From contig OZ320315.1 in NCBI GenBank assembly GCA_976226885.1, forward strand, positions 89,404,001 through 89,468,000: DNA of 64,000 bases. Direction: 5' to 3'. Positions 9,943-38,715 of this stretch are shown here, piece after piece. The position numbers were made by a program, and so were the translations under genes. Under the pieces are notes generated by a model. It saw nothing but the letters and a program-made list of their open reading frames with translations, made no database searches and was not told the origin of the DNA. Origin of the DNA: Iphione sp. A-MEVVRFRX5 (lineage: Eukaryota). Numbering within the stretch: the stretch's first letter is position 1; each line of letters opens with the position of its first letter.

Positions 9943-10136
9943 CATTACAACAAACAACCGCGTACCAGTGGAGACATTTATTACGAGAACACATAGGTAA
10001 ATAAACATTATCGATCAGTTCATCAACAGGTGTGTATTGTCAAGGTGTGTGTGCGCGGAGTGGCGAGCGTGAGCGGCGAGGGGTGAACATGTTTATCTGA
10101 GGTGTGTGTATGTGTGTGTGTGTCAGTGATTGCGCC
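9943..10136 (-). repeat. E1 repeat B2 (194 bp)
   Basis: Reads identical to 10265-10458; contains AATAAA on the minus strand (9977-9982). Confidence 0.97.
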
Positions 10137-10174
10137 CTACCGCGTAAAGCTTGTTGCTAGTTGGGTGGGTGGGC

Positions 10175-10268
10175 GGTAATCCAAACTGTCCGGCGGTTGA
10201 CCGCGAACTGAGTCACTGTTCGCGGCAGTGTAATGAAACCACGTGACCAACCGTCACGTGGGCCCATT
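10175..10268 (-). repeat. E1 repeat A2 (94 bp)
   Basis: Reads identical to 14691-14784. Confidence 0.97.
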
Positions 10269-10458
10269 ACAACAAACAACCGCGTACCAGTGGAGACATT
10301 TATTACGAGAACACATAGGTAAATAAACATTATCGATCAGTTCATCAACAGGTGTGTATTGTCAAGGTGTGTGTGCGCGGAGTGGCGAGCGTGAGCGGCG
10401 AGGGGTGAACATGTTTATCTGAGGTGTGTGTATGTGTGTGTGTGTCAGTGATTGCGCC
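10265..10458 (-). repeat. E1 repeat B1 (194 bp); shares CATT (10265-10268) with A2
   Basis: Reads identical to 9943-10136. Confidence 0.97.
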
Positions 10459-10470
10459 AAGGCAGTCTGT

Positions 10471-11364
10471 CTATCGTCTTTTAGTAAGATACCTCGCTGC
10501 TGCGCTCGAGCGCCAGTCCCCGCGAGCGACTATCTGCTGCCTCGGGACCCCTTGTGCCTGTGCGTGCCTGGCGCCCCCGTGCCGCAGCCCGTGAAGGGTG
10601 TGGCTATCGGGCGCCAGGCCCGCGGCCCCGACCGCGCGGCGCCAGGCCGGGCGCGCGTAGGACAGCGGAATGGGCGTCTGGGTGCCCTCGAAACACACAT
10701 AGGGCTGCTGGTGACTGGCTGACGGGTTCGCCTCAACCATGTCGTGGTGCGCGCGGAGTGGGCAGAGATCGTCGCCCGTGGCGCGGACCGTGATCTGCCG
10801 GGGGGTAGTGAAGAATTGCCGGGACTTAGACCACACAACGGTGAGGCGTAGCTCGTGCGGCCCGTCGGCGACGTGGGACCTCAGGAGCTGGCGGTACCTG
10901 TCGAAAGTGCTCACGTTCTGGGGGAGCAGGTTAGATTGGCGCAGCAGGGATGCGAACAGGATCAGGACCGCCGCGACCAGCGGGCGGGCCTGCGGGTCAC
11001 GCCTGAGGTGTGGAAGTATCAGGCGCAGCTTCTGTTCGGTGATAGGCAGGCGAGCTGTTGGCGCGGGTCTCGGAGTCATCTTAAGTGCTTGCAGCGCGTT
11101 GCGGACAAGAGGGGACCGCCAGGTGTCGACCGGTCTACCTTTATCCGCGAAGTGCGCCGTAAGGGCGCTGATGGTATTCGCCACACTCGCCGGGGTCGTC
11201 GTGTACGCCCTCTGCTCGATGAACGCGCAGAGGTGCTGGGGATCTGGCCTCCGATAGTCAACCCCGTACTTGGCGGAGAATGAAATGTAGGCGCGCAGGG
11301 CTGATGCCCTGTTCTTGAATGTACCTGGCCTCTTCGCGTGGCGTTGCCGTTCTTCTGCCGCCAC
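10471..11364 (-). CDS. E1 tyrosine recombinase (frame open from 11406; no AUG until about codon 96)
   Basis: Catalytic set SLLRQSN (R), WSKS (K), HGLRHGG (HxxR), RGDWRS (W), ARYL (Y). The track start is GTG. Confidence 0.95.
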   Translation of the reverse strand: MAAEERQRHAKRPGTFKNRASALRAYISFSAKYGVDYRRPDPQHLCAFIEQRAYTTTPASVANTISALTAHFADKGRPVDTWRSPLVRNALQALKMTPRPAPTARLPITEQKLRLILPHLRRDPQARPLVAAVLILFASLLRQSNLLPQNVSTFDRYRQLLRSHVADGPHELRLTVVWSKSRQFFTTPRQITVRATGDDLCPLRAHHDMVEANPSASHQQPYVCFEGTQTPIPLSYARPAWRRAVGAAGLAPDSHTLHGLRHGGARHAQAQGVPRQQIVARGDWRSSAAARYLTKRR

Positions 11365-14690: not shown

Positions 14691-14784
14691 GGTAATCCAA
14701 ACTGTCCGGCGGTTGACCGCGAACTGAGTCACTGTTCGCGGCAGTGTAATGAAACCACGTGACCAACCGTCACGTGGGCCCATT
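14691..14784 (-). repeat. E1 repeat A1 (5' end of element)
   Basis: Reads identical to 10175-10268. Confidence 0.97.
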
Positions 14785-14805
14785 CTCCCCGCTAGACCCA
14801 GGATG

Positions 14806-14954
14806 NNNNNNNNNNNNNNNNNNNNNNNNNNNNNNNNNNNNNNNNNNNNNNNNNNNNNNNNNNNNNNNNNNNNNNNNNNNNNNNNNNNNNNNNNNNNNNN
14901 NNNNNNNNNNNNNNNNNNNNNNNNNNNNNNNNNNNNNNNNNNNNNNNNNNNNNN
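14806..14954. other. Assembly gap (149 N)
   Basis: Run of N starting 21 bp outside the E1 end. Confidence 1.
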
Positions 14955-34675: not shown

Positions 34676-35653
34676 CAACCCCAAAGAAGAAGAAAAAACT
34701 GAATCAAAATTAAGTTTATCCTCCAGAGATGGGGAGAGATAGCAAAACACAGCGTCACTCCTCCACCCACCTCTCTCTTTGATCACATGAAGAGGAACAC
34801 CTAACCTAGCCATATGAGAAGCACCTCCTCGTCTGAGCGAATGAGAAGTTAGTCTCCCCTCAACACCAGCTACCATACACAACCTCTTCAACTCCTTATT
34901 GAACCATGAATACTCCAAAAAACACAACTTTCCATCTTCAATAAAGGAGAAAATTGGGAGATTTTTCGACACTCTTACAAATGAAAAAAGTAGACCCAAC
35001 CAATGAACTAGGCAAAAAATTCTACTACTACTTGAAGACACAACTATATCCCTAGGGGATTCACCAAACTGATCAGTCTTCGACCTCCGAATATGAATAA
35101 TCACACGGTCAGCAAAAATCTCAATATCACTCCTCTTCAGCCCTGAATCATCCATAAATTGATTCTTCCTCAACAAACTACGGAAGCCAAATAGAATAGC
35201 ACACCAAAACACCAACTGCCTCACCTTAGAGAGGTCCAAAACGCCATAAATCTTAACCAAATCCGAGATGGAAAACCCTTTGGATTTCAAACTCTTGCCC
35301 ATATCAATCCTCTTCAACCCACTAATCATCCATTTTATATTAAAATCCTGAACATCTGGAGGGGAGAGAAAACGTTTCCTATGCTCAAACACCAGACCAC
35401 TCAAATAGTTTGAAACCGAGCTTGGGCGCATAACCTGAGATAAGTAAGCGCAATATAATCTCAATTGGAACTGACTACATGGATAAGCTGAGAAACAATA
35501 CTTCTTGCAGAAAGACAAATAAACTTCTTCTTGTCTCTTCCTCGTCCTCACGGTATTGTCAGAGTACGCCATCTCCCTCAACATGACCATTCTCGATATC
35601 AGGCTCCCAACCGGATCTGTAAGACAAGAGCACCTCCTTACAACAAGCTTCAT
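34670..35653 (-). CDS. E2 tyrosine recombinase
   Basis: SLLRKNQ (R), RSKTDQ (K), SHSLRRGGA (HxxR), RGGWRS (W), FCYL (Y); overlaps pol by 95 nt. Confidence 0.96.
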   Translation of the reverse strand: MKLVVRRCSCLTDPVGSLISRMVMLREMAYSDNTVRTRKRQEEVYLSFCKKYCFSAYPCSQFQLRLYCAYLSQVMRPSSVSNYLSGLVFEHRKRFLSPPDVQDFNIKWMISGLKRIDMGKSLKSKGFSISDLVKIYGVLDLSKVRQLVFWCAILFGFRSLLRKNQFMDDSGLKRSDIEIFADRVIIHIRRSKTDQFGESPRDIVVSSSSSRIFCLVHWLGLLFSFVRVSKNLPIFSFIEDGKLCFLEYSWFNKELKRLCMVAGVEGRLTSHSLRRGGASHMARLGVPLHVIKERGGWRSDAVFCYLSPSLEDKLNFDSVFSSSLGLA

Positions 35654-37544
35654 TCACCCACGACGTCCACCTCTCATCGTCAACAAAGAACTTATCATCA
35701 CGCCTCGACAAGACATCAGCTACCACGTTATCTTTCGTATTAATATACTCTGACGTGATTCTAATGTTGTAAATGGTGCAAACCCAAAAAATCTCCTTCA
35801 ACCACCAGAGACACATCTTGTTAGAGCTTCTTCCTGATCTCAGCATATACAACACCTGAGTATTGTCCACCATAAACAACACATTGCTATTCCTCCACAA
35901 GTCCTTCCACCTCTTCAGAGCAACAACCACCGGCCAAAGTTCGTAAACATTGATATTCCGCTCAATCAGGTCCATCAATGGTCTACTCTCACAATGGCTA
36001 CATCCAAAAACTTTCAAGGCACCAGACCAATCACCCAAAAACCAGTCGTTCTTATATGAACCACCAAAACCCTTAAACGAGGAATCGGTATAACAGACAT
36101 GCTCAACCAAACCTGGGTCAATAATTTTACCGACCCCATTGAACAATTTAGAGAACACCAACCACCAGTTCAGATCATCTAAGACCAAATCGCTCACTCC
36201 AACCTTTTTGTTGTTTTTGGGCAAGGACTCTACAAAATCATACATACTTCTACAAAAGGTGCGCCCGCCCAGAATGATTGTGGCGCAATGAGATAGGAAA
36301 CCAGCAATCTTCTCACCTTCTTTCCTGCAAATCTTTTTTGAAGAAGTAACCTTGGTCAACATATCCCTCATTTTATCTAACTTTCCTTCAGGGAGCCTCA
36401 TAGTCATCTTTGAACTGTCTATCTCAATGCCCAAGAAAATACATTTCCTGCTTGGTTCAGTTACTTTCTTCCAAGAAACGTCAAAGCCCAAAGACTCAAT
36501 AACACCTGTGAGAATCCTCCTGTTGCTCAGACACGAATCATACGATTCACCACACACAATGAAATCATCAAGATAATTCACTACCCTACTATCCGCTAAC
36601 TGAGCATATTCCTGCACAACAAAATTGGATAACTGGGTAAAGATGTAAGGCGCGCATTTCAAACCAAAGGTTAATGAGTTACTCACGAAGAACCTCCTAC
36701 GGCCATCCAGATACCACGAAAAACCCTGATATTTTCTGCAGTCTTCTCTAACACTCACTGACCTATAAGCATTACTTATGTCCACCACACTGAGAAAGTC
36801 ACCCTCTTTTAGAAACGTACAAACGTCACCAACTGATCTATATGAGAAGTCTTCATATAATCCCTCCATGAAGTAATTAATAGAAACTCCTACAGGCATT
36901 GAACAATCAGTTATTGGCCTCAGAGAGCCATCACTTTTTGGAACCCCCCCCATAGCATGCACACATTGGGGGACATCTTCCACTTCACTCACAAAACCCT
37001 GTTTGATTTCCTTCGATATTTTCTCCGACATCTCTGACAAAAAGGGCTCAACCTCGATAGACTTGTAATTCCTGCAATAGTACTTGCCTTCGAAGTTATC
37101 ATTAACAATCTGAAAACCGCTACAAACGCCATTCCAGATAAAAACACGCCTGCTGGGATCCATAAGTCCAAAACAACACCCTCTAAAAAATCTACAAGGC
37201 CTAAGTTTGGACATAACACCCCCAATAATGTGTTTACAATCACAGTTACCATCAAGACATGTCTTATAAATTCTGATAACGTTATTACTGTTAAACATCA
37301 CATATAACAGTTTGTCATCATCAACTATGGGTGATCCTGCGGGTACACCCCCTTCAATGTCAATCAACAACCATGCATTTCCAACATTATTTTCACAATG
37401 GTAAGCATATAAGAACATGTTAGCATCCTCAACTAAAAGATTTTTAGCATCGCTATACAAAGGTTCATCAAGCCTTTCTAAGCTAGGGAAAAACAACACG
37501 TCCAAGCCTACTGCGTCATTGTAACTTTGTTGTACGTTACATAG
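35559..37544 (-). CDS. E2 pol: RT + RNase H, in the same frame as gag and directly after its TGA
   Basis: VVDISNAYRSV, LTFG, YLDDF; RNase H YTDSS/VYELWP/MVDNT/VADVLSR; frame open from 37544; the track start is TTG and the first AUG is at 37418. Confidence 0.95.
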   Translation of the reverse strand, partial: LCNVQQSYNDAVGLDVLFFPSLERLDEPLYSDAKNLLVEDANMFLYAYHCENNVGNAWLLIDIEGGVPAGSPIVDDDKLLYVMFNSNNVIRIYKTCLDGNCDCKHIIGGVMSKLRPCRFFRGCCFGLMDPSRRVFIWNGVCSGFQIVNDNFEGKYYCRNYKSIEVEPFLSEMSEKISKEIKQGFVSEVEDVPQCVHAMGGVPKSDGSLRPITDCSMPVGVSINYFMEGLYEDFSYRSVGDVCTFLKEGDFLSVVDISNAYRSVSVREDCRKYQGFSWYLDGRRRFFVSNSLTFGLKCAPYIFTQLSNFVVQEYAQLADSRVVNYLDDFIVCGESYDSCLSNRRILTGVIESLGFDVSWKKVTEPSRKCIFLGIEIDSSKMTMRLPEGKLDKMRDMLTKVTSSKKICRKEGEKIAGFLSHCATIILGGRTFCRSMYDFVESLPKNNKKVGVSDLVLDDLNWWLVFSKLFNGVGKIIDPGLVEHVCYTDSSFKGFGGSYKNDWFLGDWSGALKVFGCSHCESRPLMDLIERNINVYELWPVVVALKRWKDLWRNSNVLFMVDNTQVLYMLRSGRSSNKMCLWWLKEIFWVCTIYNIRITSEYINTKDNVVADVLSRRDDKFFVDDERWTSWVNEACCKEVLLSYRSGWEPDIENGHVEGDGVL

Positions 37545-38495
37545 TCATTTCTTACCACCCTTTGAGTCCTTGGATTTATCTGCGTTGTTGACGTTCGCTG
37601 GGCACTCATAGGCTTTATGATCTGAACTTCCACACACAAGACACGCATGTTTAAAATTACAACCACTATCATGGCAAGTGCCATTGTTAAACCTATAGCA
37701 CACCTTATCTGAACGCTTGAAAACATCGCTATGTTTCTTACTCTTCGGCCGTTGACTACCACTCTTTTGCGTATTACCGCTCAGCATCATATCAAAACAA
37801 AAATGCGAACGAATAAGCTCGTCGTCACCGAACTTAAAGGCACTTGTACCTTTCTTTTCTGCTCTTTTCCTCATGTCCTTATCATAGTCAATGAAGGAGC
37901 TGTCCTTGTACACATTTTTGATACGTTTCTCCAGGAGGAATATCAAATGGTCCAAGTAGCCAGAAATGTCATGGCCCTTTTTCAGGTGTCGCTGCACCAA
38001 ACGCACGGAACCATACATCAACTGGTCAAAACTGTCAACACTTTTAACCTTGGCAGCCGCACGCACGTTAAACAATTTCTTCTTACCCTTGGACCTCCTC
38101 TTTTTCTGCTTATCATCATCATCCGAGTCTGAATAGCTCAAAGAAGACACGTCGTCCTGGCTTGTTGACATATCGCCACCACGGTCCTTGGAAACTAGGC
38201 CACTTCCGCCCGCATCCTTTGACAACGTAGAATTGACGCCACCATTAGCCAGAAGCAGAGATATCATGTCCTCGAGTTTGCCCATTCGTTGAGACAAACC
38301 ACCATTACCATTACCATTGTCATCTGCACCATTTGACACATCAACCATCTTCGATGAATCAGTCACAATTTCTGGAAAATCAGAAAACACACGAGACTCC
38401 ACCGAAGCACCACTACCATTTTCCACGGATAATCTGCATTTCTTGCCTACAGGAGCAGAATGTTTCCTGTTACATTTCGAACAATGTCTACCCAT
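37545..38495 (-). CDS. E2 gag-like ORF1
   Basis: N-terminal CSKCNRKH...C knuckle; C-terminal CYRFNNGTC...CNFKHACLVCGSSDH...C finger; likely ATG at 38495 (frame open to 38618 inside A1). Confidence 0.9.
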   Translation of the reverse strand: MGRHCSKCNRKHSAPVGKKCRLSVENGSGASVESRVFSDFPEIVTDSSKMVDVSNGADDNGNGNGGLSQRMGKLEDMISLLLANGGVNSTLSKDAGGSGLVSKDRGGDMSTSQDDVSSLSYSDSDDDDKQKKRRSKGKKKLFNVRAAAKVKSVDSFDQLMYGSVRLVQRHLKKGHDISGYLDHLIFLLEKRIKNVYKDSSFIDYDKDMRKRAEKKGTSAFKFGDDELIRSHFCFDMMLSGNTQKSGSQRPKSKKHSDVFKRSDKVCYRFNNGTCHDSGCNFKHACLVCGSSDHKAYECPANVNNADKSKDSKGGKK

Positions 38496-38567
38496 GTTGA
38501 AAGGCGAAATTACTGCCAGAAATCCGTTGGAATAGACAAGCACCTCGGAACCAGGTCCGTACCATTC

Positions 38568-38715
38568 AAAATTTTCAATCTGAATGACGGTTGTTATCCC
38601 TAGCATTCTATAGTACACACCTGTTACTTAGGACGTCACCCAGTGACTAAGGTGACGCTACCACACATCTGTAGTTGCTATATCAATACCCAAATAAATG
38701 CCTTATTTGGTATAT
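38568..38715 (-). repeat. E2 repeat A1 (5' end of element)
   Basis: Reads identical to 34477-34624. Confidence 0.97.

Follow-up and report, generated by a model that had tools for sequence, protein, structure and literature searches.

Why should the point at which two repeats of a retroelement meet form a palindrome, and is that palindrome the place at which the element recombines with its host? The question is raised by a 64,000-nt stretch of the genome of Iphione sp. A-MEVVRFRX5 (GCA_976226885.1, OZ320315.1:89,404,001-89,468,000, forward strand; hereafter the window), which carries on its minus strand E1, a 4.8-kb Ngaro-type element of the DIRS order. To our knowledge, none of the recombinases of DIRS or Ngaro elements has been biochemically characterised, and their integration step is still only a model. 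On the sense strand, E1 has the split direct repeats of the Ngaro layout in the order A1-[ORFs]-B1-A2-B2, and B1 and A2 share CATT as an overlap. Its parts are as follows.

14691..14784, minus strand: repeat A1 (94 nt), the E1 5′ end, which holds only the inner stem and the 3′ outer arm of the hairpin described below
14524-13358, minus strand: gag-like ORF of E1
13538-11394, minus strand: RT ORF, with an RVT_1 match (1.2e-17)
10471..11364, minus strand: tyrosine recombinase ORF, 297 aa, with the catalytic R, K, HxxR, W and Y present
10265..10458, minus strand: repeat B1 (194 nt), from repeat comparison
10175..10268, minus strand: repeat A2 (94 nt), from repeat comparison
10137..10174, minus strand: the unique 38 nt of the A2-B2 interval, with a conserved tract that is C-rich on the sense and G-rich on the antisense strand
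9943..10136, minus strand: repeat B2 (194 nt), the E1 3′ end, which terminates in ...GTAATG and is followed by host DNA

The recombinase matches Phage_integrase weakly (24.2 bits, under the 27.1 cut-off) and has no sequence match among solved structures; its catalytic residues are common to the recombinase of E2, a second Ngaro element in the window. AATAAA occurs in both B copies of E1 (10299-10304 and 9977-9982, minus strand), ~34 nt before the B 3′ end. The tract at 10137-10174 reads GGGTGGGTGGG on the antisense strand, is kept in diverged copies, and might serve first-strand cDNA as a signal of the G-quadruplex type or for priming. From 22 nt past the E1 5′ end the assembly is interrupted by a gap of 149 N (14806-14954), which leaves a host flank of 21 nt there.

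An earlier, sequence-only reading of the window had described an interrupted hairpin at the junction of B1 and A2, and both its sequence and its fold are exactly as claimed: 43 nt, with a 7-bp outer stem, a 3x3 internal loop, a 9-bp inner stem and a 5-nt loop. It is built from the following segments.

10229..10271, minus strand: the whole interrupted hairpin at the B1/A2 internal junction, which templates the circle junction; most stable on the sense strand
10265..10271, minus strand: 5′ arm of the outer stem, sense TGTAATG, the last 7 nt of B1, with the exchange point directly 3′
10262..10264, minus strand: 5′ side of the spacer, sense GGC; set against the 3′ spacer it mostly gives two G.U and a mismatch across the family
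10253..10261, minus strand: 5′ arm of the inner stem, sense CCACGTGAC; its apical CGTGAC is near-invariant, and its basal three positions vary and covary
10248..10252, minus strand: apical loop, variable in sequence and 5-7 nt long across the family
10239..10247, minus strand: 3′ arm of the inner stem, sense GTCACGTGG, from the family alignment
10236..10238, minus strand: 3′ side of the spacer, sense TTT, from the family pairing table
10229..10235, minus strand: 3′ arm of the outer stem, sense CATTACA, within A2, from the family alignment

With DNA parameters the hairpin folds at -14.2 kcal/mol on the plus strand and -14.3 on the minus strand (z-scores against shuffles of -5.5 and -5.8, respectively; 0/200 shuffles as stable), and with RNA parameters at -22.5 (plus) and -25.6 kcal/mol (minus). 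It ranks second in stability among the 45-nt windows of the 4.8-kb E1; the sole stronger one (10611) was set aside as an effect of GC content (z -0.4). A search of Rfam 15 returned no match at or above the gathering score and two chance-level matches (~16-18 bits versus 58), neither of them over the hairpin. Since the complete hairpin draws on nt 33-39 of A as well as on the final 7 nt of B, the full structure exists only at B1/A2. At the E1 5′ end (14742-14788) the outer stem is reduced to 4 bp supplied by host bases, a host CATT at 14781-14784 imitating 4 nt of the outer arm that A1 lacks. The claimed repeat layout is confirmed, and so is the further claim that the outer stem is complete only at B1/A2 and shrinks to 4 bp at the integrated A1 end.

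The genome (1.18 Gb) holds thousands of recombinase matches, with 3948 first-look candidates, and we aligned 25 distinct junctions from elements whose recombinases are 57-100% identical to that of E1. In a tree of the family's recombinase DNA the lineages are deep, and the terminal branches measure 0.3-0.7 changes per site. On the sense strand, 94.3% of the 400 pair cells (25 junctions, 16 pairs) are standard pairs, and slid registers give only 19-49% pairing; both sides have changed in 18 cells, which fall in 5 of the 16 pairs. None of 500 shuffles matched the observed paired fraction, the number of double-change cells or the covariation score. The covariation test put forward for B/A junctions by the sequence-only reading was thus positive when run on the 25 E1-family junctions, with compensatory changes in those five pairs.

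The outermost pair changes from T-A to C-G in at least three lineages (L058/L060, L051/L054, L053), the second pair from G-C to A-T in L049 and L057, and the pair adjoining the exchange point from G-C to T-A in one to three lineages (L038, L041/L053, L043/L055). In the inner stem, the basal pair is C-G, G-C or T-A across the family; and pair 3 (21-41) is A-T, G-C or C-G, yet mismatched in half of the copies (13 of 25). The compensations sit at non-conserved positions and in separate lineages. The near-invariant blocks are GTAAT(G/T) with its complement and CGTGAC with G(T/C)CACG, with six near-invariant consecutive base pairs in the inner stem and five in the outer stem; the six bases between the outer and inner arm vary, as do the sequence and the length (5-7 nt) of the loop. 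Across the 25 junctions, spacer pair 16-46 is G.U in 22, 17-45 is paired in 19 and 18-44 is unpaired in 24. A genome search with a covariance model built from the family junctions gave 52 matches, of which many lie downstream of a recombinase gene at a distance of ~200 nt; internal junctions scored 53-73 bits, and the matches identifiable as 5′-terminal copies 41-52 bits. Judged by these patterns of substitution, the junction hairpin is a selected pairing, that is, a structure of single strands. One junction (L046:1243-1290) combines a left arm TAATG with a right arm AATTAC, which leaves a mismatch beside the cut; its locus has long tandem repeats, and it may be a decayed or chimeric copy.

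Repeat A contains a second covarying helix:

10189..10207, minus strand: stem-loop in repeat A, with more wobble pairs on the sense strand

Its pair 90-99 is UA in 10 copies, CG in 8 and UG in 3, and its pair 87-103 is UG in 15 and CG in 5. In some lineages its arms read GTGAC/GTCAC, which are the half-sites of the inner stem of the junction hairpin.

The ends of integrated copies indicate where the element is joined to its host. E1-family insertions have no target-site duplication, and their flanks are unrelated except for (A/C)AT(T/G) beside the 5′ end. In all 26 independent insertions the 3′ end stops at GTAAT(G/T), always in the reading of the copy's own internal junction, including five copies that end in ...GTAATT and have an internal junction of that same reading. 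The 5′ ends begin with GGC and are preceded by host (A/C)AT(T/G), and in window orientation five of the seven clear 5′ ends have a host A in place of the C of the element junction (5′ end/junction pairs L004/L002, L022/L006, L023/L005, L024/L007 and L029/L008). No CATT-type 3′ end (0/21) carries the host base, and partner bases beyond the exchange point were found at none of the 21 3′ ends and none of the seven 5′ ends. The host base across the exchange point is weakly biased (T in 14/26, window orientation), and the host flanks of the insertions show neither similarity to the spacer nor a second half-site.

Because 3′ ends keep the element base while 5′ ends carry the host A, these ends place the exchange at a single phosphodiester, sense GTAATG|GGC or window GCC|CATT, between 10265 and 10264. 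A 4-nt or 6-nt staggered overlap would leave host-type bases at many 3′ ends, of which we saw none among 21. CATT had initially been taken for the crossover core, an assignment that does not survive the 26 of 26 3′ ends with the element base and the five of seven 5′ ends with a host A; the CATT of E1 is therefore host microhomology and not an overlap region, and the tetranucleotide that lies 5′ of the exchange point on the sense strand is common to both partners. A microhomology-mediated joining of linear cDNA was rejected, as a base that usually mismatches separates the shared AAT from the exchange point, and so was a telomere-resolvase-like reading, as the exchange point lies away from the dyad centre. 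On the fold, the exchange point coincides with the border between the outer stem and the internal loop. It thus lies at an arm-spacer border with the arm on its 5′ side, and the host motif resembles that same arm. A recombinase that forms a 3′-phosphotyrosine, as in the chemistry of Cre, XerCD and IntI, sits on the arm 5′ of the cut.

Which strand folds can be read from the substitutions that change one side of a pair and leave a wobble. Among the 25 junctions, 17 such changes leave a wobble pair when read in sense and 1 when read in antisense, or ~13 lineage events versus 1 when counted on the tree. The sense hairpin is the more stable in 21 of 22 distinct sequences with DNA and with RNA parameters alike, with mean energies of -11.7 kcal/mol versus -10.1 for antisense under DNA parameters (Wilcoxon p 5e-5) and of -22.8 versus -17.1 under RNA parameters. 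Many family members have A.C mismatches on the antisense strand where the sense strand has G.T or G.U (90.3% versus 94.3% of cells paired), and the "3x3 loop", read on the sense strand, consists for the most part of two G.U/G.T pairs with a single mismatch. As far as alignment and predicted energies can tell, the family data speak for folding of the element's sense strand, the minus strand of the window. The wobble bias and the energies argue against antisense first-strand cDNA as the folded species, and this part of the initial proposal loses its footing. We know of no intermediate that is single-stranded DNA of sense polarity. The single-stranded cDNA of DIRS-1 is antisense (PMC7192593).

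E2 (34400-38715) has a recombinase 26% identical to that of E1 and a junction of unrelated sequence, which nevertheless can be folded:

34592..34627, minus strand: E2 junction hairpin, with a 6-7 bp outer stem, a small internal loop or bulge, an 8-bp inner stem and a 5-nt loop

In this one copy, the hairpin is the top-ranked fold on its plus strand and the third on its minus strand, and it too is more stable on its sense strand. By its geometry, the E2 junction hairpin is judged to be of the same design as that of E1. The expectation that junction hairpins are conserved across families accordingly stands in part, for 25 junctions of the E1 family and for a single copy of E2. The exchange point of E2 is ambiguous, with a 5-nt overlap in a TA-rich host site; among the genome matches listed, ~40 are diverged relatives of E2. 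The sole AATAAA of E2 (34456-34461, minus strand) lies in the unique segment before B2, and E1 has AATAAA in both B copies; the two families thus place the poly(A) signal differently relative to the junction. In repeat A of E2 (34543-34570), a 7-bp inverted pair, CGTCACC...GGTGACG, contains the GTCAC/GTGAC motif of the E1 inner stem, which, going by its recurrence in both elements, may be a shared protein-binding half-site.

We tentatively read the 43-nt palindrome as a recombination site presented as a hairpin or cruciform of the sense strand, a reading that may well be right and that we stop short of calling probable. Such a site would be the element's equivalent of phage attP. Its two constrained arms, GTAAT(G/T) and CGTGAC/GTCACG, with six variable bases between them, would have the layout of a tyrosine-recombinase core, and folding of the sense strand, whether of single-stranded DNA or as a cruciform extruded from circular cDNA, would make each arm double-stranded through intrastrand pairing. 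A cruciform from a supercoiled circle could supply the folded sense strand without any free sense-strand DNA. The element's tyrosine recombinase would then bind both stems, cut the sense strand at 5′-GTAATG|GGC, on the border of outer stem and spacer, and join the cut strand to a host site cut after (A/C)AT(T/G), with the folded form as the substrate and one strand exchanged. As the products show only one exchange point, we infer that replication or repair, and not a second staggered exchange, would complete the junction. The two new ends could not refold, and the internal duplex copy would presumably be a poor substrate.

The invariant duplex sequence and its likeness to the target motif argue for a recombination site at the DNA level, and the polarity of the cut and the wobble bias point to the same strand, which favours a folded DNA, modestly only. 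That positions free to change covary, that one strand is favoured and that the loop is variable speaks against both a purely duplex palindrome and E-boxes; a loop that varies between 5 and 7 nt is tolerable for a hairpin and would not be expected of two phased duplex sites. A point against the folded-DNA site is that two G.U/G.T pairs close most of its spacer on the sense strand and make it less like the unpaired spacer of attC. In a literature search of incomplete coverage, we found no description of a Ngaro junction hairpin or of a folded substrate for these elements.

The sense strand is also the strand of the RNA, and G.U pairs biased to one strand (17 wobble changes versus 1) are a classic signature of RNA structure. 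The hairpin could accordingly act in the sense genomic RNA at B1/A2 while the recombinase uses ordinary duplex DNA, the main alternative, though one that we consider somewhat unlikely; its possible roles are a binding or template-switch signal for reverse transcriptase, a packaging signal, or a mask of the internal poly(A) signal. The E1 RNA fold is the stronger in sense (-25.6 kcal/mol versus -22.5 antisense), the spacer is closed by conserved G.U pairs, and the second covarying, G.U-rich helix in repeat A suggests a generally structured leader RNA. E1 has AATAAA in both B copies, at ~30 nt upstream of the hairpin, so the junction hairpin could suppress the internal site, and a 3′ hairpin has been proposed as the primer of DIRS-1 reverse transcription (cited in PMC7192593). 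Masking of the poly(A) signal was discarded as a general or shared function, E2 having its AATAAA only in the unique segment. What speaks against an RNA element is that runs of 6 and 5 near-invariant consecutive pairs are unusual for an RNA stem and typical of duplex-DNA recognition, that the outer arm, being also the host-target motif 5′ of the exchange, is a DNA-level recognition element anyway, and that nothing at the RNA level accounts for a hairpin straddling the exchange point in two unrelated families. The half-sites GTAATG and GTCACG are alike (GTMAYG) and lie six bases apart, a usual distance in tyrosine-recombinase cores. The palindrome might be two inverted core-type sites (arm-N6-arm) on double-stranded circular cDNA, its apparent covariation arising from both arm copies tracking one protein specificity; the classical DIRS/Ngaro model does have a double-stranded circle (PMC3266345, PMC7192593). 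Such a plain duplex site is unlikely in our estimation. Compensatory changes also occur at freely varying positions (the outermost pair and the basal inner pair), and the base adjoining the cut co-changes in both arms, though host targets show that G or T is accepted; a duplex predicts no strand asymmetry, against the 17 versus 1 seen; the spacing of the two cores varies by 1-2 bp; and heteroduplex footprints, such as a second staggered exchange would leave, are absent.

The antisense first-strand cDNA of the sequence-only reading, the window plus strand, is a very doubtful substrate. E1 itself folds equally well there (-14.2 kcal/mol, z -5.5), and antisense single-stranded cDNA is a documented DIRS-1 intermediate (PMC7192593); across the family, however, that strand has A.C mismatches and less pairing (90.3% versus 94.3%) and is the less stable in 21 of 22 hairpins. 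On it the exchange point would also fall within the hairpin's 3′ half, 3 nt away from the inner stem, a position that in our view misfits the polarity of arm, then cut. Host transcription factors, finally, might account for the motifs, which lie within the repeat forming the E1 5′ end: two CACGTG E-boxes (USF/Myc type) or a CRE-like TGACG would serve as a promoter in the 5′ repeat and the palindrome would be a by-product. We take the E1 CCACGTGACC to match a strong USF-type E-box; but CACGTG is unconserved (CCCGTG, CGCGTG or CACGCG in many lineages) where CGTGAC/GTCACG is fixed, TGACG is lost in L035, L040 and L044, and the outer stem with its covariation is left unexplained, which makes the promoter reading highly improbable. 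Together with chance and with readings not considered here, it makes up a small remaining probability.

On the folded-site reading, integration would be one-way, as had been claimed from the sequence at the outset. That claim holds for the two hybrid ends, which cannot refold, and only for them, because an intact duplex site persists inside every integrated element. A complete circle would likewise have two site copies in direct orientation, and if duplex sites were good substrates, circles would split and genomic copies would rearrange. Most of the 30 copies examined keep the full repeat layout. One member (L039:1296 with L019:1542-1600; G000 C2, ~19.063-19.068 Mb) has B-internal-A only, without the A2-unique-B2 module, as would be expected if the module had been lost when the repeats recombined, or if a unit-length circle had inserted; in its 5′ flank, six bases happen to agree with the B end. 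Recombinase genes also occur in same-orientation pairs, at G000 C19:13948487-13953417 (4.05 kb), C8:467322-475955 (7.8 kb) and C4:74802936-74810607 (6.8 kb). The 4.05-kb spacing is about one unit length and may mark a tandem array, which, if true, would bear on the use of resident duplex junctions as targets.

For a large and apparently young Ngaro family, the analysis delimits a site of 43 nt with two candidate binding arms, places the exchange exactly, and names a target motif and the strand predicted to react, and the junction hairpin offers a testable lead on the integration of a poorly understood class of elements. Should the site be used in folded form, the presence of hundreds of intact duplex junctions in the genome without rearrangements would be explained; should it act in RNA, the hairpin would be a new conserved cis-element of Ngaro genomic RNA.

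Set beside known systems, the E1 junction shares with loxP and FRT two inverted half-sites around a 6-bp variable spacer and cleavage at the arm-spacer border. It differs from them in half-sites of only 6-7 bp, in the doubling of the site into a palindrome whose non-conserved positions covary, and in that the E1 family shows neither a trace of a second staggered exchange nor homology between spacer and target. DIRS1-like elements, tyrosine-recombinase retroelements as well, also have their circle junction templated by an internal copy of the joined termini; junction and target have a short NTT/ATT motif in common, and target-site duplication is absent (PMC3266345). The target motif of the E1 family is consistent with that sharing. 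AT(T/G) is common to its junction and target, the adjacent base differs in five of seven events and the exchange lies outside the shared bases; the shared ATT of the E1 family appears to lie beside the exchange point, where the DIRS1-like model of a 3-bp circular junction has recombination across the shared motif. The DIRS-1 junction has been noted as self-complementary (PMC7192593), but that complementarity is between inverted terminal repeats and an internal region, whereas E1 has direct repeats and a local 43-nt hairpin.

Closer likenesses come from sites that fold. In attP(+) of CTX phage, used by XerCD, two inverted recombinase-binding sites on one strand fold into the site and one strand is exchanged, as proposed here for E1; CTX integration is effectively irreversible, the duplex prophage being without the folded site. 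CTX relies on host recombinases, a forked hairpin whose sites are separated by ~90 nt, and a truly single-stranded phage genome, whereas in E1 the loop is 5-7 nt, the recombinase is element-encoded and an intact duplex site is kept in each integrated element. With integron attC and IntI the E1 junction has in common an imperfect palindrome that can be read as a folded single strand. In both, the cut falls in the 5′ half of that strand, where the conserved outer box borders on the spacer; another box is paired, the terminal loop differs in length among sites, exchange takes place at one point next to a short motif conserved in the target, and one strand is preferred. E1 departs from attC in being a retroelement of a eukaryotic host, in an inner box that is sequence-invariant across its family and variable in attC, in a spacer of only 3 nt per side that is mostly wobble-paired on the favoured strand, and in having no evident extrahelical bases, the irregularities being a 1x1 mismatch at 18-44 (24/25) and the often-mismatched pair 21-41 in the E1 family, and a one-base bulge on the sense strand of E2. 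Its recombinase, moreover, matches Phage_integrase weakly (24 bits), and folding-dependent recombination is here only a proposal. For attC, use as the folded bottom strand has been described (PMC8876359). With somewhat more reserve than we attach to the site itself, we suggest that eukaryotic tyrosine-recombinase retrotransposons may integrate as integron cassettes and CTX phage do: from a circle junction folded as a sense-strand hairpin or cruciform, one strand would be exchanged, at the border of stem and spacer, with a host tetranucleotide of loose specification; replication or repair would finish the insertion; and inertness of the hybrid ends and of the internal duplex copy would make it one-way. 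If so, animal retroelements would join bacterial integrons and filamentous phages as users of structure-specific single-strand recombination.
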